The notes under the pieces: model-generated
What the model was told of the DNA's origin: nothing
The model's input: only the letters and a program-made list of their open reading frames with translations
The model's database searches: none
Position numbers and translations under genes: made by a program
Part shown: one piece after another, positions 166 through 14,203 of the stretch
Numbering within the stretch: the stretch's first letter is position 1
Layout of the letters: each line of letters starts with the position of its first letter
From: Oopsacas minuta
Taxonomy: Eukaryota > Animalia > Porifera
Assembly (NCBI GenBank): GCA_024704765.1
Contig: JAKMXF010000365.1
Span: forward strand, 620,001-684,000
Direction: 5' to 3'
DNA: 64,000 nt

Positions 166-2957
166 AGAAAGTAGAGGAACCTTCACTTTCTCCATCAGAT
201 CATGAAGATGAAGATTTGGAAGATATTCAATCTGATCCAGCCAAGTCTACAGGTTCATTTAATCAGCTTGGAGGATTCTATGTGAATGGAAAACCTCTGA
301 ACATAAAGTTGCGTGTACAAATTATTCACCTAGCATCTGTTGGCATGAGGGCCTGTGATATCAGTAAAAATCTCAAAGTATCTCATGGCTGTGTTAGCAA
401 GATCATCACGAGGTACTTTATAGTTAATTATATATTTCTGGGAAAAATGATCTATATGGGGGCAAATAATTTTTTGCATAGTTTATTCATAACTTTTTTC
501 TGATAGAAAAAACTGCTAAAATTTTGTGAGGTGTAAAATTAGATTTCCAATATCTCTCCAATTTGTAGTTTCATTTATTTCAGCTAGCTAAAGTATAGAT
601 GTGCGATAATAATTTATTCCGAGCGTTGTAAATATATGAAAGTACTTGTAAGTTTTCTGAAAATCCCAATTTTCGTTTTCAGGTAATTTATTTGTTGAAT
701 GTATTACACCGTCTATGAATATACGTTATAAAGTTGGTAATCTAATATAATTATTTTACAAATCTGGCCATTAGATATACGTAGTGTAACATATATGTAT
801 TCTTAAAAAATTACTTTCATTTGTTCATATGATAATATTATATTATTCTTACAACTCAAATATATATGATTGAAATGGAAATACAATTCTGATATTTGTA
901 GACTACTTTATAAGATCCATACAAAATTCTTACCATCCTCAGAATTTCGGAAAAATATTTTGTCATCGAGCAAACCAACTGTATAAATTTGCATATAATT
1001 AAGTTACTAATGATTGTGTTCATTTCAGATACAAGGAGACTGGCTCTATAAATCCAGGATTTATTGGAGGCAGTAAACCAAAGGTAGCTACCCCTGAAGT
1101 TGTTGCCAAAGTAGCTGACTACAGAATTAGGTTCCCTGGAATATTCGGTTGGGAAATAAGAAGCAAGCTAATTGAAGACAAGGTACTGTAATTTATATTA
1201 TCTCTAAGCTTTAACTTGATTTAATTCTCATAATTTATAGATTTGTGAAGAGAAGAGTATTCCTTCTATCAGCTCAATCAACCGTATTGTAAGGTCATTG
1301 GAGAACAGGGACCATTCGTTTTTAGCTGTGAGTCCTTAATTTAATAGTGACCCGAAAATATTTCAATATTTTATGAATAATTCATATAATAGGAACTGGG
1401 TTCTCCTCTCTCGCCTCTATCCTTCCCAAACCAAGATATTTCCAACACCATATCCCCACCTCATCATCCAATGGAACATCATTTCCAGAGTCCTAAATAC
1501 CTCTCTCATCTCTCAAAGCAATACACTTCACCTCACAAAGAGGCAGTAACTAGTTACACATCCTCTATTTCCCAGTACACCAGCAGGTACAAGTCTTGTC
1601 CTAACAAACCAGCGATGCATGGAAGTGAGGTATCCAAACCTCCCTGTAGATATTCCTCTCTCTCCAAACGACATAAAGGTAGAATTAATAAGTTAAAATA
1701 TCACACTAGTAGATTTAATACAATCATTTTATTCATAGCTAATACTACTACTGCAGCTAACCGTAACATATCTCAAACCAAACAACCTCATGACTCATCT
1801 TCTAACAGTAGTTACGAGGAGGTAAGTATTTAGAATAATATATTTACTGTCAATATACTATATTCACTGTTATATTTCAGTTCATCCCTCTCCCGCAGAA
1901 CTGGTCTAACTCCACACAGGACAGCGGTGTGTGGAGCGATTTGTCTGACACTTATCCTAACTATCCTCTCTGTCACCCATACAAACCTTCATGTAAACGT
2001 AAACTGAGTTTTTCAGGTGTCACAGACCTGTCACAGCCCCCTGTCAAACGCTCACTCAAGAACTCTGCTACTCTTCAAAACACACCGACTTCTTCCACAA
2101 AGATTACTAGAAAGAGATCACGTAAATCAGCTTGTATAGAAGATACAGGTTCAATCACCAGATCAGAAAAACGAGCTAATAATAAGAACTCTAAATCTAA
2201 TGTACAGGTTAAACAGAAGTACCAGATGTTGCCAGGTTGCAACGCTGGAATGTTAAGTACTCAATCCCTCCCTACAGTAACATATTCTAGTATTCACTCT
2301 ACTCAGGAATCTGTTGGTTACTCCTCTCTCACTCCATCTCAAGATCCAAACATCTTCCCTTCTCCTCCTAGTCATAGCATACCATTACCTGACTTATTAC
2401 CTATTGACAGCTCCTCCCTTCTATACCCATGTTCCTCTGTAGTGGATCCTGCTAGCTCCTGGCCTGATAAAGACGTAGGGGCTCCTAGCTTGGCTTCTAG
2501 TCACTACAATACTCCATCTCCTCCTAGCTTCCACACAGATATAGGCTACTCAACTTCTAACTCTACTTATTCTCAAAACTCTAACAAGATAGAAGCATCA
2601 TCTCAATTATCAGAACATATTCATTGTGGTTCTATGCACCCCTCTTACTTCTACTCTCAATATCAAGCCGCAGACTCCCACTGGAATGTTACACCCTCTA
2701 GATTACAACCAATTAACCCACGTTACACATCACAAGATGGCAGATGTCAAGTACAGGAACCTTTCAAACCTCTACCTATGTCTAGTCCTCCTTCCTATCT
2801 ATCCACCCGCACTAGATACCCCTCTCCTGACTCTACCTCCACACATCCCTTCTACACCTCTACCTCCCTCTTCCAACAAGCAGAGGAAGGGATACATTCT
2901 AGAGCCCTGTTACCAAGCATGATTGACTCTACTCACTCTCTACCACCAGGTAATTAA
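166..2957 (+). CDS. Pax-family transcription factor (paired domain; no homeodomain seen), multi-exon, 5' end uncertain
   Basis: The paired domain assembles across exons ~166-412, 1029-1182 and 1241-1327: [36 protein letters not shown]|[36 protein letters not shown]|[18 protein letters not shown]. An in-frame exon follows from 1393, then a Ser/Pro-rich terminal exon ~1881-2957. Confidence 0.9.
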
Positions 2958-3892
2958 TTCATTAATAATACAGTCAACATTTCTTACAAATTTGATTTTA
3001 TCGCGATCTTCTCACTAAATAGATAAATATAATTATTAAGTCTAAGTGACGCTACAACTCTGTTAACCTGCTAATCATTGAGGTTATTAATATATCCTCA
3101 AAAGATTACCAAATAATTAGATTATTATTATTAAGAAGGTTTCTATTATTTGCTCTTATTCCTGTCAGATGGATTATTGTAGCACTTACGTGTGTAACAC
3201 GATAACTCTAATTATTCTTTTTTCTAGTTTCACTAGGGGAATTAACACATATTACAAGCACTGTACAGTCTAATTATCCTATTCTATCTCCTGTCAAGGA
3301 TTCTAACTCCAAGAAATGTCCCTCTATCAATCCAATTAATAATGAAGGTAATTTATAACGTAATTATTAAGAATCCAATTCGAATAAAATTAAGAATTAT
3401 ACCATACAATAACTACTGTGCTTGATATACGTAATACAAAATGCTTTCAATGAGTTTTACTTCGGTTAATAACGACCTGACTATGATAAAGTTGGACACG
3501 ACTATAAGTTATACTAGAAATGATATTTTGAAATATAAAATTTGGATTTATAGTTCTGAACGATTCACCATTGAGCACCTGCAGCTACCCTCTCTCCTTA
3601 GACACAAACCAAACTATTCCCACTGATAGCAGCAGTTACTACCTATCTGACGTCACACACCCTTTCTCTAGCACCCTAGACGATACTATATTCCCTACTC
3701 CTCCTTCTTTTCAACTCAGCTCATAATACGTTTTTAATCCATCATTTACAGCAGCATATCACTTGTATAAACTTTGTTTACAAATATACGATACAGCAAT
3801 TATAATTCGATAAGAAATCTATTTCTAATATATTATGCACATCAATATTTGTAGTACGAATTCACACATTCGATTAAAATATTATTATCTAG

Positions 3893-4744
3893 TTAATTCG
3901 CTTTCTTTCCGGGAAATACAAATATCTTAGGATCAGTTAACTCAGTGAGTTGTCTAAACAACATATTAAATGTACCAGTGACAGTAACAACCTTGGTATA
4001 ATCCGGCTTGAATGTATTCAGTATAAGTATAAGAGGAGATTCTTTGCCTTCCTTATCGATTAGTATTATAGGCTTGAGCACCACGAAATGTCCACCTACA
4101 TCAGCAATGAATGCAGGTACATCTGAATCCAAACTTTCCCCAAATCGCTCTAACCACTGAGACGGAGTTAGATGTAATCTCTCTCCTGTATTTAACGTGA
4201 CGTCATAGAACATATTAAGGTGTAAAAATGGCTCTTCCTCATTCAGTCTGTCTTTCTCTTCATGATACACTTCTCCTAGATCTCTCTCTAGCCTCCTTAC
4301 GAAATGTATTTTACCATTCTTCTTTTTGTGTAGCCAATCACTTATCTCGTAGTTAGCTACCCAGTCTCGTAGATATCTCTCTTCATCATATATTGTACCA
4401 GAATTTATTAATTCAACAGGGAAGTTTGTCTTATGATTTAAGACATACTTTTGTCTGTTGTTTAAGAGCCATGACATCATTTCCCTAACTTCTTCCAACA
4501 CGCCAGCTGGATGGCTCAATATCTTAACCATCTTCTCAACATCTCTAGTCTGCATACGCAGAGAAGAGAAGTGAGCAGACACGAGCTCAGCTATACAACA
4601 AGAGAGATATCCACATATCATACTAGCTGTCCTGAATTCTTTGATAGAGTTTGTGAATGCATCATTAAGCTGGTCTACTATCTGTAATTCCCTTATGATT
4701 ACTTCTCCATCCTGAGAACTGGAGGCTGTTTCTGTTTTAAACAT
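3893..4744 (-). CDS. Intronless 283-aa protein of unknown family; candidate papain-like Cys-His-Asn peptidase fold
   Basis: Uninterrupted ATG-to-stop ORF with globular composition. Motifs are ASMICGYLSC, VGGHFVVL and LILNT. Confidence 0.7.
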   Translation of the reverse strand: MFKTETASSSQDGEVIIRELQIVDQLNDAFTNSIKEFRTASMICGYLSCCIAELVSAHFSSLRMQTRDVEKMVKILSHPAGVLEEVREMMSWLLNNRQKYVLNHKTNFPVELINSGTIYDEERYLRDWVANYEISDWLHKKKNGKIHFVRRLERDLGEVYHEEKDRLNEEEPFLHLNMFYDVTLNTGERLHLTPSQWLERFGESLDSDVPAFIADVGGHFVVLKPIILIDKEGKESPLILILNTFKPDYTKVVTVTGTFNMLFRQLTELTDPKIFVFPGKKAN

Positions 4745-5245
4745 TGGATATTGTATATTTCCTATCTAATCTCTACTATTTAGTTATGGGATGGGGGGAA
4801 TATAAACCGAATTCCAAAAAAATAAAATCTGAAATTTTAATATATAATTCTGTTCCCAACACATTCACATCGTCAATAATTTATGTTTCGTAAACCGTAT
4901 ACAAACAAATAGCTCACTTGAAATATTAATCTAGCAATTATCTTCTATAATAGATAAATACAAGAATTAAAATATAAATAAGAAGCACAATTATAAACTT
5001 GTTTTTTTGAAGAATATTCGTTACTCCTGATCTAGAAATGCAATTAAGTATATAATTGAAAGTTTAATAATGGATTCAGCAATGTGGCTCCAAAGTTCAT
5101 AATGACTAGGTTTATAATCATTTATTGGAATTGGAAAAAATTTTAATTTATGACCGTGGCGAGACTTAGAGTTTTGAATATTGACAAAATATGATATAGC
5201 TAGTAAAGGTGGAATAGAAATTATTAGCTCTTATGCAGCAATGTA

Positions 5246-8200
5246 CTATATTTCAAAGGTTGTAGAAACTGACTTAGATTTTCTCTTTTGAGAATAAACA
5301 AATAGATATTTCAGTTGCATATCAGCACTGGAATCTACAACAATATAACTCTCTGGAGAGTTCTTCTTAGAAGTAGAATACGCCTTCTTATCAACATAAC
5401 ACACTGCTACACAGCTCAACCTCTCTCCTAGTATAGATTTATTCCATACAAAACTAGCTTGAGGACTGTAGTCTATAGAAATAGCTAGATCTGATCCAAA
5501 ATAGATACCTTTTCCAAACAATGATCTCTAAGAGTATATTATTCATAACCAACCATTTAGTATCAAATATTTCCTTACATAACATAGCTAGATACAATTA
5601 TAATTTTAGAGGTGCAATGATGACAAAGATATAGGGACAACTGATTATTATGTGAAGCCCCATAAGGGAAATCGATAGGCCTGAGCACCTTGTTAAATTA
5701 TTTAACACCTCTTTAGAAAGGTGTGAATTTATACACAATTAAAAGTTTGATAGAAATACATTCGTATAAAGCGTATATTAATTAGCGCTATTGGTCTTAC
5801 ATCGATAATTTATAGATATTACAAGTATAGCAGTAAATTTACGAACCTCTGAAGCAAATAACGGAGATAGCCCATTGTGTAGGATCGAGTGGAAATTCTC
5901 CAACTTTGACCCATGGTAAGCTAAAATGCAATTCTTAGCAAGAAGAGCTTCTCTATCTGGATAGGTAACTTCCAAAATAGCTCTTGGAGCAGGCATGCGG
6001 TATCCAGTAGGTGAAGTTGCTTGTATTATTCTGCTATACTAAATATACGATAAGTAAATACAGTAGAAACCGATTTTTTCTTACTATTTCTTTGCTCGGA
6101 AAAAACCGGTTTCGAGTGTATATTGGTATCAATGTTTTGTGACAAATGAAAGTTTTCCAAATACTTAGCATATTTATTGTTTAGGTTACCATATGTACTC
6201 ACCATTGAAGGAGAAAGGGTCTTGATACTAACTCTCCGTGGGAAAATAATCCATTGAACAAGTTTGTAGAGATTAGAGTTAGAGGAAATATCTTTCAGTG
6301 ATTTAAGCTGATTTAATTCCCCGAGTATACTCAACTATAAGAGAAGGAAAATCATCGAATTGCTAAAGGAATCAAAATATTGCAAAATATTCTAGTATCT
6401 AACTCTAATGCATCAGATACTAGAATATTCTAGAAATCTGTTTCGTTTAAGATTACTCTGAAAGTTTTATACACTACAAAAAGCAATCCAGCCTGTAATT
6501 GCACATATCGAATAGATTGAATCATAACGCCCCCGCAACATGAATTGAAACATGATCCTTGAGTAGATGTGCTATTTATAAGGGAAATTTATTAAAATTG
6601 ATATTTCCTAATTAATATTGTGCTTTGGATAATTCCTTGAATGATTCGTTGGTAGGTAAATTACCTTAATTTACCTTAAGGAATTGACCTAGTCAACAAC
6701 CAATCAAAGGGGAGGCAACCTAGTGAAGGTCAAAAATGTAGGACACGTAGAATTAGAAGTAGTATAAATATGAATAGAGTCGAATTAATTGGCCAATAGC
6801 TCAAAACTGAGATTCCATTTAACAGACATTTGTATTGAATTCAATAGTTGAAATTCTACCATATTATAACCAGTGGTGTCCTGCTGTGGGAGCGGGTGGG
6901 AGCGCCGCTCCCATACTTTTTTTTAACAAATCAAATTGGCAAGTAACAATTACTTCAGGAGTTACTGAATTTGTGTACCTGATATCTATAGTAGCATGCA
7001 ATCAATATTTGAAATCAATTGAAATTTGTTCCAAATATAATTTAGTCGAGTTGGAGAGCAAATGTTTACTTTATAGCGCCGTGCAGGCTTGGACCGGGTC
7101 ACTATTTTCAATGAATTTTGGGGTCTGAACCGGGTCACTGATTTTGACTTGACCCGGTTTATATCCTTATAGATAATTTGATTATATTGGTTTGTAAAAT
7201 CATAAAGATTCAGTCAATATTAGTTGGACGTTTCATTTTCATGAATCATTAGTATTTTTACCAAACTTGTTTGGTATCATTACTACTGTATACTTATATA
7301 CATATATACTCTTATGTACGTATATAGATATGTAATATAGAAAATTAATGCTTTGAAAAACCGGGTCACCGGGTCAGGAAATCATGACCCGGTCCAAGTC
7401 TGGCGCCGTGAATATATCGTAGAAGTTATTCCATGCGACTCATCTGAATGCGAAAGGGGGTTCAGTTAAATGAATATCATATTGGATGAGAAACGAAACC
7501 GGCTTACAATAGAACACGTTTCTTCTTTGCTGTTTATCCAGCTTAATGGTCCACCACTGACTATTTGGAGACCATTGGAATATTCTAAATCTTGGCTCTT
7601 GCACCATAATTCAGCAACAGATATCCATGGCTTGAAATCCAAAATTTCTGAGCCCCATAAACAAGAAGAAATTTGGAAGTATTATTAGTTAAATAATTCT
7701 GGGTACTCAATCACTTGTTAGAACTCTATATTCAGATTTACTACTAAACCTTTGATATTATTCATACTTATCTTATTAATTCAATTACCAGTATATTGTT
7801 TGAATTTTGTATTAGAAATTAGGATATATTCAATTGAATTTAAAATTTGAAATACCGCTCCCATACTTATAATTAGAGCAGGGCATCTCTGATTATAACA
7901 TGGCCAGTTTGAACACACCAGATTACATCACCACGGCAAGAAACGCCCAAATAGCTAGTGTAATGTCGCAGGTACATGACAGGCTCAAAGAGTTACATAA
8001 AATTATAGCCGAGAGAGAACAAACTCTTATAGCAGAGCTTGAATCCAGCAGGAATGTGAAATTAGACGATTATATTCCTGCTAACATAAGCCAAGACATG
8101 TCCCTAGTGAATAGTTTTACACATAGGAATGATCAAACAAGGCCAGTTCCATCAAGTTTCGAATTGGATTATTCCATACTAGAAGCAGTAAAATCAATTG

Positions 8201-9577
8201 GCCATTTCACGTACTCCGATACGCCAACTAATCACACAAAAGGCAGGAGTTATGTACCAAAGCCTATGTCCAACCCAGGTAGAAATAATCCCACTGTAGC
8301 TGTTGGGAAAGGAGGATTAGCACCTGGAGAGTTTAATGTTCCAAGAGGATTAGCTATAGATCCTACAACCTCAAACATTTACATAGCTGATTGTGTGAAC
8401 CATCGTGTACAAGTTTTCAATTCAGATGGCCAATATCTGTTCCATTTTGGAAACGAGCGAGGAGAAAATAAGATGTGTAATCCTTGGAGCATCTGCATAT
8501 CTATACAAGGCTTATACGTAACACAGTTCAAACTAGGCGCAATCCACGCATATAAATATGATGGAACATTCGTAAATAAAACAGGATCAAGGGGTAAAGG
8601 AGCAGGACAGTTTCAATACCCAGAAGGTTTAACCAATGACGTAGATGGAAATGTTATCATTTGTGATCGGGGTAATAACAGAGTTCAAGTTCTAAACGGT
8701 GAACTAAACTATCTTACAGAATTCGGTAGTGAAATCTTGAAAAAGCCTCGTGATGTGAAAATAGTTTCCGAATACGTAATTGTCCTAGACAAGTCAAATC
8801 CCTGCTTGCACGTGTTTACGATTCGTAGCGATAAAAGTGGAGTAGACCATATTCAAGACATGATAACACAAGGCCAGGGAGAGCAAGTGTGCAAACCAGG
8901 GTTCTTCACACTTGATGGAAACAACTGTATCCTAATTAGCGACCAATGGAATCATACAATCAAATGTTTCTCTGCAAATGGTGAATACAAGAAGGATGTT
9001 ATCAGCTTGTGTAACCTGTACAGACCACAAGGAATAGATTATGATACAACCAAACATCAAATTGTGTGTGTTTGTTGGAACCAATCAGATGTATTACAGA
9101 TTTTCAAAACGGAGTGTTTAACTAAGTAAATTCTTGTGAATAATTCCCATTAAATATTATAGTTTTGTGTGTGTATTGATTAAAACTATTTATATCTTGC
9201 TTACAAATACATCAAATGCGGTCGAATTCTACACGTAGACGTCATGGTATAGAAGATAGTATCATCACATATAAAATACTTAATTGCAAATACGAATAAG
9301 TTTCGAATGGTCACGATTAAATAAAATGAAAATATACAAATAAACTCACGACTTCTCTCTGTCTACCCTGAGACACTGTAGACTGGTGTAGACTAGAACT
9401 CATCTCTGCATAGTCAGGAGGACAAGGTCTAACTAGACTGTGATACTTGAAACTTCTACAAGCTGATAAGAACAGAGCGATGAGTAGCTCACTCGCTTCT
9501 CTGTCCTCTCTAATACGAGACTGTACACACATTTCCTTCGTAACTGTGTGGGTTACATCTGTATCAGCACACGCCAT
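5246..9577 (-). CDS. PARP16: PARP16-like mono-ADP-ribosyltransferase; 3' end (possible TM-tail exon to ~5030) uncertain
   Basis: Exons 9577-9350 (ELLIALFLSACRSFKYHSLVRPCP), 6334-6203, 6038-5847 (YHGSKLENFHSILHNGL) and 5527-~5270 (RSLFGKGIYFGSDL..LSCVAVC..SYIVV..LKYLFVYSQK). The first three introns are phase-0 GT-AG and the H-Y-Y triad is present. Confidence 0.88.
7084..7402. mobile_element. hAT-type MITE (319 bp) nested in the larger hAT element
   Basis: 18-bp TIRs CAGGCTTGGACCGGGTCA / TGACCCGGTCCAAGTCTG (17/18 match), exact 8-bp TSD GCGCCGTG at 7076-7083 and 7403-7410, and repeated internal CCGGGTCA motifs. Confidence 0.9.
7425..7688 (+). pseudogene. hAT transposase C-terminal (dimerisation-region) remnant
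   Basis: Translates as VIPCDSSECERGFS*MNIILDEKRNRLTIEHVSSLLFIQLNGPPL, the hAT CERxFS..RNRL motif, with an in-frame stop. Confidence 0.8.
7900..9129 (+). CDS. Intronless NHL-repeat (beta-propeller) protein with N-terminal coiled coil; TRIM-NHL-like without RING or B-box
   Basis: NHL repeats FNVPRGLAID..IYIADCVNHRVQVF and FQYPEGLTND..IICDRGNNRVQVL. Lies antisense within PARP16 intron 1. Confidence 0.9.
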   Translation: MASLNTPDYITTARNAQIASVMSQVHDRLKELHKIIAEREQTLIAELESSRNVKLDDYIPANISQDMSLVNSFTHRNDQTRPVPSSFELDYSILEAVKSIGHFTYSDTPTNHTKGRSYVPKPMSNPGRNNPTVAVGKGGLAPGEFNVPRGLAIDPTTSNIYIADCVNHRVQVFNSDGQYLFHFGNERGENKMCNPWSICISIQGLYVTQFKLGAIHAYKYDGTFVNKTGSRGKGAGQFQYPEGLTNDVDGNVIICDRGNNRVQVLNGELNYLTEFGSEILKKPRDVKIVSEYVIVLDKSNPCLHVFTIRSDKSGVDHIQDMITQGQGEQVCKPGFFTLDGNNCILISDQWNHTIKCFSANGEYKKDVISLCNLYRPQGIDYDTTKHQIVCVCWNQSDVLQIFKTECLTK

Positions 9578-9780
9578 CAAAACTACTATTCGTCTATGAC
9601 TACAATATAACCCGGGCTATGTATTTGAATTTAAAATGAATTATTTGCTTCGACTTTGTCGAATAAGATACATTTATAGCTTATTAACCGAATTTTACAG
9701 TATGGATGATTGCTTTCTACATTGAATTTAAACAAATGTCAAATAATTCTCTAGCCGCCCACGTTGTATAATACATAAAA

Positions 9781-10884
9781 TTACTGTAAGAAAGATAGAG
9801 GGTACATTGGTTTACCGTCTAGTACATATCTGATCCAATGCTTAACTGAGGAAGATCTCAACCTCACATACTTCAAGTCATCATATGTAACCCAACAAGC
9901 ACCAGCACTCTCATAATCAGGTGTTGTTTTAGGCAGCTGTTCAGTATGGGAGGGATTAGGTCTAGCATAGAATACAACTTCCATCCTCATGCCTCCTCCG
10001 TGGTATCTCCCATGCTTAATACTCAATATTCCTTTTAGCCTTATATCTATCCCTACTTCTTCCTTGACTTCTCTTATCGCTGCACTCTGGAATCTCTCCA
10101 GAGGGTCCACACGTCCACCTGGTAGCCAATATCCCAGCTGACCGAATTCCTGAACACATAAGAACTTGTTGCATTTTTCTCGTTGAACAATAACTAAAGA
10201 GAACCCATAGAATGTCTCAGTTATGAGTGGAGATAAGAGTGCAGCTTTCCTTACTACAGGTCCATGAGTTTCATGTATGTGCTGGCCTGCATTTTTGACT
10301 TCATTAGAACAAATCGGACAAAATACTTTCTTGACTGGACAGTTAATATGATATAGTGGGAAGTGATTCCACAGGTCATCTTCTCCAAGTCTAGCCAGTC
10401 CACATTCAGGACACGTGAGTGTAGAGCTAGACTGGTGTCTGGTGAGTAGATAGGAGAGTACTTGCTTCACACACCTCTCACTCTGTTCTACTGAGCTAGT
10501 CACCATGTTAACACCTACATCTGCTAGTTCCAGTCTCTTGTACGCACTCTCTGAAAGATATGTATCCAGTAGACACACGAAAGTATCGGAGAGGAGTTTG
10601 ATACGTTTGGAGAGGAATGGTACCATTTTGGTGTATCTCTCTCTACCACAGGGCCCTATGAGTAGTAGTAACAGTAGATCTGATTCTGGATTCCTCTTCA
10701 GTCTGTCTACTAGCCTCTCCAACTCTATCATTCCCTCGCCCTCACTCACGATACTACACTCCAGCTGTTTGTAAGAGGCTAGTGATAAGCTTACTTCTCT
10801 CAGCTTGTCATCTGGCCAGCAGATAACTACATGACATGTAGCTAGTTGAGGGACAGGGCTTTTTGAACCAGATTTTGTAGCCAT
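9781..10884 (-). CDS. Zinc-finger Nudix hydrolase, copy 1 (intronless)
   Basis: Intact Nudix box GRVDPLERFQSAAIREVKEEVGI. C2H2-like fingers CPECG..LWNHFPLYH and CPICS..GQHIHETH. The ATG is at 10884; the ORF track starts upstream at a GTG. Confidence 0.88.
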   Translation of the reverse strand: MATKSGSKSPVPQLATCHVVICWPDDKLREVSLSLASYKQLECSIVSEGEGMIELERLVDRLKRNPESDLLLLLLIGPCGRERYTKMVPFLSKRIKLLSDTFVCLLDTYLSESAYKRLELADVGVNMVTSSVEQSERCVKQVLSYLLTRHQSSSTLTCPECGLARLGEDDLWNHFPLYHINCPVKKVFCPICSNEVKNAGQHIHETHGPVVRKAALLSPLITETFYGFSLVIVQREKCNKFLCVQEFGQLGYWLPGGRVDPLERFQSAAIREVKEEVGIDIRLKGILSIKHGRYHGGGMRMEVVFYARPNPSHTEQLPKTTPDYESAGACWVTYDDLKYVRLRSSSVKHWIRYVLDGKPMYPLSFLQ

Positions 10885-11539
10885 TTTTGTTGAATGTTGA
10901 TAATGCACTAAATACAGTAGTATACTATCAATATGCTTTATAACAGAACAACCAGATCAATCTACTATATAAACTTTTTATGTTAGTTTCAACATTCAAA
11001 AGAACTTATTTATGGCTATAAAACGAAGCCCTGTCCCTCAACTAGCTACATGTCATGTAGTTATCTGCTGGCCAGATGACAAGCTGAGAGAAGTAAGCTT
11101 ATCACTAGCCTCTTACAAACAGCTGGAGTGTAGTATCGTGAGTGAGGGCGAGGGAATGATAGAGTTGGAGAGGCTAGTAGACAGACTGAAGAGGAATCCA
11201 GAATCAGATCTACTGTTACTACTACTCATAGGGCCCTGTGGTAGAGAGAGATACACCAAAATGGTACCATTCCTCTCCAAACGTATCAAACTCCTCTCCG
11301 ATACTTTCGTGTGTCTACTGGATACATATCTTTCAGAGAGTGCGTACAAGAGACTGGAACTAGCAGATGTAGGTGTTAACATGGTGACTAGCTCAGTAGA
11401 ACAGAGTGAGAGGTGTGTGAAGCAAGTACTCTCCTATCTACTCACCAGACACCAGTCTAGCTCTACACTCACGTGTCCTGAATGTGGACTGGCTAGACTT
11501 GGAGAAGATGACCTGTGGAATCACTTCCCACTCTATCAT
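10348..11539. repeat. Long inverted repeat: arms ~10348-10861 and ~11026-11539 (~514 bp), 164-bp spacer
   Basis: Base-by-base reverse-complement match. The only difference noticed is a synonymous CTA/CTC near the distal end. Confidence 0.92.
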
Positions 11540-12127
11540 GTAATCAATGCCAATATGTCAGGGGTGTGTCCTATATGTGGAAGCAAAGAGAAGAACATAG
11601 CTGTACACCTGCATGACAACCACGGACCGGCGAAACGTGGAGAGGTAGTGGCAGACTCTCTCTCACCCAAGACAGAATTCAACGGTTTCGCATTCTCAAT
11701 AGTCAGACGTTCTAACAAGTATCTTGTGGTGCAGGAATTCTTAGGACAGGGCTACTGGTTCCCAGCTGGTCGTGTGGACAGACACGAGACCTTCCATCAG
11801 GCAGCAGTAAGAGAAGCAAAGGAAGAAGCAGGAGTAGACATACAACTAACCGGGATACTAACTATACATCATTTCCCTCATTACTCGGAACGCCGTAAGA
11901 AACCAATCCTCGAGGTTTGTGTGTATTTCGTAGCACGCATGATAGATGAGAATCAACAACTTAAGACTACACCAGATTACGAGAGTGCAGGGGCGTGTTG
12001 GGTTACAGCAAATGAGTTATGTGACCTCCGTTTGAGAAATATAGATATACTAGCTATGACAAGACAAGTGGATTCAGGAACACCAATTTTACCGCTAAAA
12101 GCCTTGGACGTAATGCATCTATACTAA
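11012..12127 (+). CDS. Zinc-finger Nudix hydrolase, copy 2 (intronless)
   Basis: Intact Nudix box GRVDRHETFHQAAVREAKEEAGV. The N-terminal ~170 aa are identical to copy 1. Confidence 0.88.
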   Translation: MAIKRSPVPQLATCHVVICWPDDKLREVSLSLASYKQLECSIVSEGEGMIELERLVDRLKRNPESDLLLLLLIGPCGRERYTKMVPFLSKRIKLLSDTFVCLLDTYLSESAYKRLELADVGVNMVTSSVEQSERCVKQVLSYLLTRHQSSSTLTCPECGLARLGEDDLWNHFPLYHVINANMSGVCPICGSKEKNIAVHLHDNHGPAKRGEVVADSLSPKTEFNGFAFSIVRRSNKYLVVQEFLGQGYWFPAGRVDRHETFHQAAVREAKEEAGVDIQLTGILTIHHFPHYSERRKKPILEVCVYFVARMIDENQQLKTTPDYESAGACWVTANELCDLRLRNIDILAMTRQVDSGTPILPLKALDVMHLY

Positions 12128-12268: not shown

Positions 12269-14203
12269 CTAATATTCAGGATTTGTAGTTGAATCTTGGT
12301 GAGGTTTAAATTTAAAAAATGCTATACCCTTCCTCGCCTTCTCCACAAGAACCTTAAGTTTTTCCATGTTTTGGTCTCGTTTAGCATTGAATTGTTTGAT
12401 TCCCTGTAAGTTTCCACTACCAGCACAAACAATAAACATAGTACCAGGACTAGCTCTATTGAATAATACTTCAATAAGTTGTAACATGCTAGCTAGTAGC
12501 TTCCTTACCTCTTCGCTACTGACTTCCTTTCCTTCCTCGTACTCCTTCTTGCAGAAAGTATGGAAATCATGCATTTGTAGCCAAATAAAATCATAAGATT
12601 TTGAATTTAAACCTTCGATTGTATTAGAAACAATGCTATCGTCTCCAATAGCAAAACTGCACTTAACATTTTGAGTTTTTACATGTTTCCCTAGTAATGC
12701 CTGATGATCCACTAGTAAAGAGTTAACACCACAATATCCCATATAATCTACTATACTTCTCTTGTCTTCATGCCAGCTGACTGAATATTCAGGTCCTCGC
12801 TGTAATTTGGTTAATAATAGCTCCATACATACTTTAGCATCTTCTATAGAGTCGTGACCACATGGAGATGTCTGGATAGTTTTATTCAGCACTTCTTTGG
12901 CTAGAAATCTGAGACTAGGCTTAAATGTTGGAGTAGAAGTAGGTGTAAAAAGGAAGGTCGTATCAATAATGTGTGACACACAAAGCTTCATAACCTGTAG
13001 ATCATTCTCTAGAGAGTGACCTAGTAATATCGTTCTATCAGTTATTATATTTCTAATTTGAGAATATACGTCTTGTATACTGGTAGTAACACCAGCTAGC
13101 TTTTGCTTCGTAATACCACTGTATTGAGTTTTATAGTCAGTGATCTCTTCATCAGGTATTACAAAACTATCATACACACACTCTAGCTGTTGATTAACAA
13201 GAGATATTCTAGTGAGAGCTCTGCCACTAGCTGTATCACAGAACTCACAATCTAGTGCTAGTATAATTACAGTGTCGTCTGTCAGTTCATTAAACGGTAC
13301 TTGTTCTACTACCTCATAGTTAGGATGTGTTTGAAGAGAAGGGAACGAGTTTACATACATTTCTTCTTCAGTTAATAAGTAAGAGCATGTTACTCTACCA
13401 GGTGTTGGATCATGTTTAAATTTCTTTACCGTATTTTGATGATCTTGTATTAACAGTATCGCTTCATAGCCAGGGCGTACGAAGCGATCAGATCCCGGGT
13501 TCATGAAATGGAAGAGTTTTGTCGATTCAGAAGGAAATGTGACTTGGAATGCCGGCCAGTGTTCTTTCACTAGTTCGGGTGACACGTGTGCCATCCATAT
13601 GACAACCACTGATGACAGTGAGTGACAGTTGACATCTGGAACATCTCTACTGACTCGTAGTCTTAATAATTGAATTATTATATTCTGAAGATCTCGTATG
13701 GTAAACACAAATTTCTGTGTACTATGTTTATTCCTGATTATGTCGTTAACCAAACGAATATGTTGTTTGGGGGAAGTTAGGAGAGCAGTTAGATTGTAGA
13801 AGTGATTCAATTGGTTTTTCTCTACCGTATAGCTAACTGTTTGTTCTAGCAATTTCTGCTTCTCCTTCTCCTTCTTTCTGCGATTTTTAGCTTTTTTATG
13901 CCGCCTTTTTATGGCTAACTGTTGTCGTTGTGTAGAGAACAAGTAAGGAGTTTTATTTTTCCTATTTTTATCTTCTAACTGTAGTTCTTCTTCAGAACTT
14001 GAGCACTTAGGAGCTTCATTCTTACAATCTTCTAACTGTGGTTCTTCTTCAGAACTAGAGCACTCCCCTTCCTCTGAAGAGTTACTCCTCTTCCGTTTAT
14101 TAGCTCTCCTTTCCGGATCTAACTTAACCTCCATGCCTTCTGGATATTCTCCAGATGAACATTCTCCATCTTCTGGACCATCTATCGTGTTCTCTTCAGC
14201 CAT
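12269..14203 (-). CDS. REXO5: DEDDh RNA exonuclease, REXO5/Rex1(RNH70)-like, intronless
   Basis: ExoI LALDCEF, YKTQYSGIT, ExoII GHSLENDL, IIDT and ExoIII GHDSIEDA. The YLLTEEEM motif precedes the nuclease domain and the N-terminus is acidic/basic. Confidence 0.78.
   Translation of the reverse strand: MAEENTIDGPEDGECSSGEYPEGMEVKLDPERRANKRKRSNSSEEGECSSSEEEPQLEDCKNEAPKCSSSEEELQLEDKNRKNKTPYLFSTQRQQLAIKRRHKKAKNRRKKEKEKQKLLEQTVSYTVEKNQLNHFYNLTALLTSPKQHIRLVNDIIRNKHSTQKFVFTIRDLQNIIIQLLRLRVSRDVPDVNCHSLSSVVVIWMAHVSPELVKEHWPAFQVTFPSESTKLFHFMNPGSDRFVRPGYEAILLIQDHQNTVKKFKHDPTPGRVTCSYLLTEEEMYVNSFPSLQTHPNYEVVEQVPFNELTDDTVIILALDCEFCDTASGRALTRISLVNQQLECVYDSFVIPDEEITDYKTQYSGITKQKLAGVTTSIQDVYSQIRNIITDRTILLGHSLENDLQVMKLCVSHIIDTTFLFTPTSTPTFKPSLRFLAKEVLNKTIQTSPCGHDSIEDAKVCMELLLTKLQRGPEYSVSWHEDKRSIVDYMGYCGVNSLLVDHQALLGKHVKTQNVKCSFAIGDDSIVSNTIEGLNSKSYDFIWLQMHDFHTFCKKEYEEGKEVSSEEVRKLLASMLQLIEVLFNRASPGTMFIVCAGSGNLQGIKQFNAKRDQNMEKLKVLVEKARKGIAFFKFKPHQDSTTNPEY

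Follow-up and report, generated by a model that had tools for sequence, protein, structure and literature searches.

The window analysed here is a 64,000-nucleotide (nt) stretch of the glass sponge Oopsacas minuta (assembly GCA_024704765.1, contig JAKMXF010000365.1, positions 620,001 to 684,000); all coordinates given without a locus name are those of the window. It carries an intronless gene, here called gene B, whose product joins three domains: an N-terminal CheY-like domain (the N-domain), tandem zinc fingers of the Di19 type and a Nudix hydrolase domain. Gene B probably encodes an active Nudix pyrophosphatase (a predicted activity, of the NudJ/YmfB, NUDT18 and Ap4A hydrolase type) combined with Di19 fingers and with a non-phosphorylatable pseudo-receiver which would act through its beta4-alpha4-beta5 face; the gene itself is probably an old eukaryotic one.

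Nudix hydrolases and receiver domains are each well known. Their fusion through Di19 fingers is not described in the literature searched, and the N-domain lies outside Pfam. The fusion is spread patchily over eukaryotic supergroups, two animal lineages included. It is a defined case, open to testing, of a receiver fold that has been taken over as an accessory of an enzyme outside two-component signalling; it also places Di19 fingers, recently connected with ADP-ribose reading, in a new context.

Architecture of gene B

The preliminary description of this DNA proposed an intronless three-domain enzyme, with a candidate pseudo-receiver and KCMF1/Di19-type zinc fingers at 11012-11640 fused to a Nudix hydrolase. 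This architecture is borne out. The open reading frame (ORF) is uninterrupted; the segment 11012-11640 holds the N-domain and the Di19 fingers, and the Nudix domain lies just 3' of it (Table 1). Pfam recognises zf-Di19 and NUDIX after an alpha/beta N-domain; the Pfam scan of the gene B product assigned no domain to residues 1-150. A database protein identical to the product (P0001) is encoded on a 1.06-Mb contig. The neighbouring record (P0002), which corresponds to the paralogue described below, carries the NCBI name 'NUDIX hydrolase domain protein [Oopsacas minuta]', which identifies the window as nuclear DNA of a glass sponge.

Fold and kinship of the N-terminal domain

The fold of the N-domain was predicted from an alignment of 45 N-domains (A2); residue counts in this and the following sections are over 44 relatives. 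The AlphaFold2 model (predicted local distance difference test, pLDDT, 82; predicted template modelling score, pTM, 0.74) has a strict order of five beta-alpha units, with strands at residues 14-19, 38-43, 69-73, 101-103 and 124-126 and helices at 23-32, 45-61, 78-90, 105-119 and 129-145. The five strand and helix segments picked out in the preliminary description coincide with these elements, and Foldseek agrees with the flavodoxin/CheY-like (beta-alpha)5 fold that it suggested. Matches in the PDB are mainly response-regulator receivers (RcpA, CheB, KdpE, Spo0A, DesR, PhoB and ETR1), the others being CheY-like domains of TadZ/CpaE and corrinoid-binding domains (E ~1e-4 to 3e-3, template modelling (TM) scores 0.5-0.57). 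Most of the bacterial clusters that match the ESM Atlas model of the N-domain, at TM 0.61-0.73, are response regulators. As leads only, language-model features suggest OKR_DC_1_N, Response_reg and Rv3660c_N (scores 0.86-0.89), which we take to be members of the CheY-like clan.

Since fold alone cannot tell receivers from other flavodoxin-like domains, a profile-profile test was run with hhalign. The receiver profile was made from seven E. coli K-12 receivers (CheY, CheB, BasR, DcuR, KdpE, OmpR and PhoB); the comparison set consisted of three decarboxylase wing domains (AdiA, CadA and SpeF), the flavodoxin FldA and the B12 domain of MetH. The templates were taken from annotated loci and are small. 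A2 aligned with the receiver profile at 74% probability (P 2.7e-5, score 35.7); the alignment extends over 94 columns, starts in beta1, ends at the alpha4-beta5 turn and stays in register, the 'GA' turn included. Against the wing domains (OKR_DC_1_N), the flavodoxin and the B12 domain, the probability did not exceed 0.22%; the reversed alignment and 30 column shuffles reached at most 0.23% (score 11.3). Receivers and wing domains, which are presumably clan mates, served as a control pair and gave 70% (P 3.9e-5); the remaining control pairs tried gave 0.44% or less. In these profile comparisons the N-domain matches receivers no less closely than the wing domain does, and the likeness is specific. 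Identity as a B12-binding domain or a flavodoxin is rejected by the same controls.

Searches with less information recovered little. Pfam scans of the 45 N-domains gave no Response_reg match, only scattered single matches and no family, and a profile search of the N-domain against PDB sequences gave marginal matches only. An exhaustive phmmer search with the sponge N-domain alone found one close sponge relative and nothing else; when the N-domain of a more typical member (P0033, residues 1-133) was used to score a word-indexed search, P0033 itself was all that came back. Single N-domain sequences are too divergent for a survey of the N-domain in partnership with other domains.

Loss of the phosphorylation site and a conserved face

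The residues of receiver phospho-chemistry are missing throughout the family. In the hhalign register, the column of the CheY acceptor D57 is occupied by L72 in gene B and by V (16), I (9), L (8), A (8), F (2) or M (1) in the relatives; no Asp is conserved in the columns next to it. The column of CheY K109 holds S128, and the family reads S, D, C or Y here, never Lys. The absence of acceptor Asp and Lys, claimed earlier for this one protein, thus extends to all 44 aligned relatives. At the acidic pair after beta1 (CheY D12, D13), Asp or Glu is found at positions 22-23 in fewer than half of the N-domain sequences. All that is retained is the small or hydroxyl residue after beta4 (CheY T87), which appears as S104 in 25 of the 44, and the Gly-Ala/Val turn.

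As judged from these alignments, the N-domain is a pseudo-receiver of the CheY-like superfamily and not a canonical receiver. The loss of Asp and Lys is family-wide, which indicates an old pseudo-receiver rather than degeneration in sponges. If the Asp is missing from the receiver in every lineage, no His-Asp phosphorelay is implied; consequently, the contrast with animals, which are generally considered to lack two-component systems, is less striking than it may seem.

The conserved core of the N-domain in A2 reads TF.(I/V)V.S..A......RL..F..G.NMVT. F99, R114 and M124 are invariant and G121 is nearly so, and the best conserved surface is the beta4-alpha4-beta5 face on which these four residues lie. 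In the hhalign register, the invariant R114 falls on CheY I95 and V125 falls on CheY Y106, two positions which we take to lie on the alpha4-beta5-alpha5 output face of receivers.

The sponge N-domain shares its (beta-alpha)5 fold with receivers (CheY, PhoB, KdpE), with the N-domain of TadZ/CpaE and with the 'wing' of Orn/Lys/Arg decarboxylases. With receivers it also has in common the small residue or Ser after beta4, the Gly-Ala/Val turn before beta5 and a best conserved face at alpha4-beta5, the usual output face. Unlike receivers, it has a hydrophobic residue in place of the acceptor Asp, no beta5 Lys and an unconserved acidic pair; it is not recognised by Pfam Response_reg, its fusion partners, in eukaryotes, are a zinc finger and a Nudix enzyme, and no histidine kinase is implied.

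Nudix domain and likely substrate

The NUDIX match (PF00293) covers residues 228-339 with an E-value of 7.3e-16. The Nudix box agrees with the signature GX5EX7REUXEEXGU, and G253, E259, R267, E268, E271, E272 and G274 are invariant in the relatives. The domain has the alpha/beta/alpha Nudix fold; AlphaFold2 pLDDT is >90 over most of it, and Foldseek matches it to solved Nudix enzymes (E ~2e-9, TMt 0.73-0.81). By sequence, it is closest to E. coli NudJ/YmfB (phmmer E 1.3e-5, residues 221-369); by structure, it is closest to NudJ (3dku, TMt 0.76), Ap4A hydrolases and human NUDT18 (4hvy, TMt 0.81, 26% identity). In the Foldseek list, ADP-sugar entries rank lower, and the top 50 do not include NUDT16.

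NCBIfam equivalogs for NudJ, NUDT18 and MutT gave at best 27-35 bits against cut-offs of 98-200. As no equivalog cut-off is reached, the same substrate as NudJ or NUDT18 cannot be assumed. By analogy with its closest relatives, the domain is predicted to hydrolyse a nucleoside-diphosphate-X, with a nucleoside di- or triphosphate as the likeliest substrate. The sponge domain resembles NudJ/YmfB and NUDT18 (MTH3), its best sequence and structure matches, in its complete Nudix box. Unlike these small single-domain enzymes, the sponge protein adds an N-terminal pseudo-receiver and a Di19 finger, and it has a family-specific motif 3' of the box (P317 K318 .. P321 D322. E324 S325. G327 A328 in the 44 relatives).

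Di19 zinc fingers

The zf-Di19 match (PF05605; E 3.2e-7, positions 2-54 of the hidden Markov model) scores 30.9 bits against a gathering cut-off of 27.5. The zinc ligands C155, C158, H171 and H176 of the first finger and C186, C189 and H199 of the second are invariant in the relatives; H204 is nearly so. Compared with solved structures, the region gives a weak match to the KCMF1 fingers (E 0.04). The tandem fingers named in the preliminary description are upheld by the Pfam score and the conserved ligands together with this weak match.

Like plant Di19 proteins, KCMF1 and the RING-UIM (ubiquitin-interacting motif) ligases RNF114 and RNF166, the sponge protein carries a pair of C2H2-type zinc sites spaced as in Di19. 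Unlike in those proteins, the fingers stand in an enzyme rather than in a ligase or transcription factor, and there is no UIM. In RNF114, the ADP-ribose pocket of the Di19 domain includes W181/G182, Y186, E193 and R198 (PMC12583694). By eye, against these published residues, the sponge second finger is a short form (9 residues from C189 to H199) with no Trp-Gly loop like W181/G182 and no evident ADP-ribose pocket loop.

Proposed working of the protein

The full-length AlphaFold2 model (pLDDT 90, pTM 0.88), in which the N-domain scores higher than when folded alone, suggests that the three domains form one compact unit. In a shape search of the ESM Atlas with this full-length model, the matches were confined to the Nudix part. 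We infer a regulatory role for the pseudo-receiver. It would not be switchable by phosphorylation; instead, its beta4-alpha4-beta5 face (F99, R114, G121, M124) may dock on the Di19/Nudix part or pair two subunits. Such docking or pairing would gate or localise the hydrolysis of a nucleoside-diphosphate-X, most plausibly a nucleoside di- or triphosphate, possibly in oxidised form.

Distribution and origin

Two further assemblies, which share the microsynteny and are taken to be glass sponges, have the three-domain layout, as do Rotaria (bdelloid rotifers), several chytrids, Volvocales (Pleodorina, Astrephomene), the dinoflagellate Effrenium and the stramenopiles Florenciella and Odontella. Foraminifera and Amoebophrya have further relatives, counted here as related sequence and not as cases of the three-domain layout. 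Among up to 8000 candidates, a profile search with A3 added only chytrids and sponge fragments. Among animals, full-length relatives were found only in the glass-sponge assemblies and in bdelloid rotifers and are not widespread in these searches, which are word-indexed, can miss divergent animal copies and sample named eukaryotes thinly.

A quick maximum-likelihood tree of 50 proteins was built with Shimodaira-Hasegawa-like approximate likelihood-ratio test (SH-aLRT) support; the wrongly fused C-terminus of P0002 was trimmed. Left out were 16 rows (P0004, P0008, P0011, P0019, P0024, P0031, P0032, P0035, P0050, P0052, P0053, P0055, P0056, P0061, P0062 and P0066), mostly fragments; others are without a typical first finger or are the weakest match. 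All sponge sequences fall in a single long-branched clade (support 100), which is joined weakly (61) to a metagenomic clade. Rotaria is sister to the chytrids (SH-aLRT 95), and the green algae and the sequences of stramenopiles, alveolates and Rhizaria fall in their own groups.

The rotifer and chytrid genes sit among ordinary eukaryotic genes; they span more DNA than their coding length and so have introns. The lack of introns in the sponge gene is no sign of transfer, because the neighbouring 644-aa and 409-aa genes are also intronless and the O. minuta mean is 1.59 introns per gene (PMC10280926). The preliminary description had left a choice between a gene transferred from microbial eukaryotes and one shared with them. 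Sharing is borne out by the occurrence in chytrids, Volvocales, a dinoflagellate and stramenopiles; transfer finds no support in the tree. The simplest reading is old eukaryotic ancestry with many losses, the gene being kept in few lineages.

Paralogue A and gene conversion

Gene B has a head-to-head paralogue, gene A, with the same three domains (Table 1). Neither ORF is interrupted, and both have the invariant catalytic residues; the NCBI model of gene A (P0002) starts MATKSG. The 127-nt spacer between the divergent start codons is presumably a shared bidirectional promoter. The 5' halves of the two genes form a perfect inverted repeat whose arms are separated by 164 nt; in each gene it takes in the pseudo-receiver and finger 1. 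In 90-nt windows, the first ~540 nt of A and B are 87-100% identical, with 100% across the repeat; the remainder is 47-69% identical. The drop in identity lies between the two Di19 fingers.

The second assembly (ERZ20067936) has two copies ~10.5 kb apart (L001 10001-11125 and L002 10001-11092). Their identity is 99-100% over the first 450 nt, drops to 84% in the window that follows and is 49-76% from there on. When the two species are compared with each other, identity in the 5' part is no more than 41-74%. Near-identity of the 5' halves within each species, combined with low identity between species, indicates that the duplication predates the species split and that the 5' halves have been homogenised by gene conversion in each. 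On these identity profiles, the two divergent paralogues provide a clean example of concerted evolution that is limited to certain domains; most simply, the head-to-head duplication arose in glass sponges.

In the third sponge assembly, copy A (L003 9175-9864, minus strand) starts only at the end of the N-domain, copy B (L003 9989-10990, plus strand) is without its first ~45 residues, and the inverted repeat is only 123 nt long. This short version may be a collapsed palindrome or a real deletion.

In the second assembly, the 10.5 kb that separate the paralogues (L001 ~500-9000) are rich in short inverted and direct repeats, and transposase-like ORFs are present. An HTH_SB domain lies inside this spacer and a DDE_3 domain lies nearby, beyond gene B. 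This arrangement suggests a transposon insertion into the former bidirectional promoter region.

Alternative explanations

It is rather doubtful that the N-domain is a generic doubly wound alpha/beta module (flavodoxin- or Rossmann-like) which has no traceable kinship to receivers and resembles CheY through a common fold only. The hhalign comparison favours receivers over flavodoxin, B12 and wing domains with strands in register, reversed and shuffled alignments fail, and CheY-like families are also what the Atlas model and the language-model features indicate. Horizontal transfer from a microbial eukaryote into glass sponges, and separately into bdelloid rotifers, is unlikely. Bdelloids are known for foreign genes, and transfer would fit an intronless sponge gene, the restriction to glass sponges and Rotaria among animals and the grouping of Rotaria with chytrids. 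However, this grouping is also expected from opisthokont descent, intronless genes are common in O. minuta, and word-based searches can miss divergent animal copies; moreover, the sponge clade is nested with support in no microbial clade and the gene lies in sponge-conserved synteny. That the locus is an assembly artefact (a fold-back misassembly) or a dead gene deserves hardly any credence. Assemblers can create structures such as a perfect 514-nt inverted repeat around a 164-nt spacer, and the shortened version in the third assembly could be read in the same way; yet an independent assembly of another species repeats the pattern with its copies ~10.5 kb apart, and neither ORF is damaged. The artefact reading of the inverted repeat is rejected by the same identity pattern in the second species.

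The protein could also be a reader and eraser of protein ADP-ribosylation, in which Di19 binds mono-ADP-ribose or ADP-ribosylated ubiquitin, the Nudix domain cuts the ADP-ribose pyrophosphate and a PARP16-like protein is the partner in sponges. The Di19 domains of RNF114 and RNF166 bind ADP-ribose marks (PMC12583694, PMC10632493), NUDT16 cleaves protein-linked ADP-ribose (as cited in PMC12000418), and the gene directly downstream of paralogue A is PARP16-like, in an order kept in the two other sponge assemblies. This adjacency and gene order are absent from the rotifer and chytrid loci, however, and the three sponges are close relatives whose shared synteny says little; since it is conserved only among sponges, the adjacency has little weight as a functional clue. 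In addition, the Nudix domain is nearest to NudJ, NUDT18 and Ap4A hydrolases and not to ADP-ribose enzymes, and the second finger seems by eye to lack the loop of RNF114. Such a function is quite improbable. More speculative, and very improbable, is a eukaryotic reader-eraser whose Nudix domain cleaves the mark to phosphoribose under gating by the pseudo-receiver, with the sponge pair working together with a PARP16-like writer and the paralogues perhaps pairing through identical pseudo-receivers kept so by conversion.

Neighbouring genes

The gene order around A and B is common to the other two sponge assemblies. The exons of the PARP16-like gene were searched separately and not joined; the NCBI model P0002 is wrong in running paralogue A together with the ARTD15_N exon.

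Table 1. Features of the gene A/B locus in the O. minuta window (aa, amino acids)
Feature	Position	Strand	Details
Gene B	11012-12127	+	Intact intronless 371-aa ORF, no internal stop, stop codon included; pseudo-receiver, zf-Di19 and Nudix
CheY-like pseudo-receiver (predicted), aa 1-150	11012-11461	+	F99, R114, M124 invariant; G121 near-invariant
zf-Di19 tandem C2H2 fingers, aa 152-205	11465-11626	+	Pfam PF05605; KCMF1 match; invariant Cys/His
NUDIX domain, aa 228-339	11693-12028	+	Pfam PF00293; intact Nudix box; Foldseek to NudJ/YmfB, NUDT18
Nudix box, aa 253-275	11768-11836	+	G-RVDRH-E-TFHQAAV-REAKEEAGV, complete
Gene A, head-to-head paralogue	9781-10884	-	Same three domains, intact Nudix box; likely ATG 10884, listed ORF starts GTG 10908
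Left arm of 514-nt 100% inverted repeat (5' half of gene A)	10348-10861		Repeat search, identity profile
Right arm of inverted repeat (5' half of gene B: pseudo-receiver and finger 1)	11026-11539		Repeat search, identity profile
Spacer between divergent start codons, 127 nt	10885-11011		ORF coordinates
PARP16-like gene, downstream of gene A	5246-9580	-	ARTD15_N exon 9317-9580; PARP catalytic exons 5778-5996, 5246-5521
NHL-repeat gene (six-bladed propeller)	7900-9129	+	Intronless, 409 aa; opposite strand, inside PARP16-like intron
RNase_T-type (REXO-like) exonuclease	12269-14203	-	Intronless, 644 aa; tail-to-tail with gene B

The nesting of the NHL-repeat gene in an intron of the PARP16-like gene is also seen in the two other sponge assemblies (L002 13838-15088 and L003 6683-7951). 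The exonuclease has an acidic, Ser/Glu-rich N-terminus, and its adjacency to gene B is kept in the other sponge assemblies.
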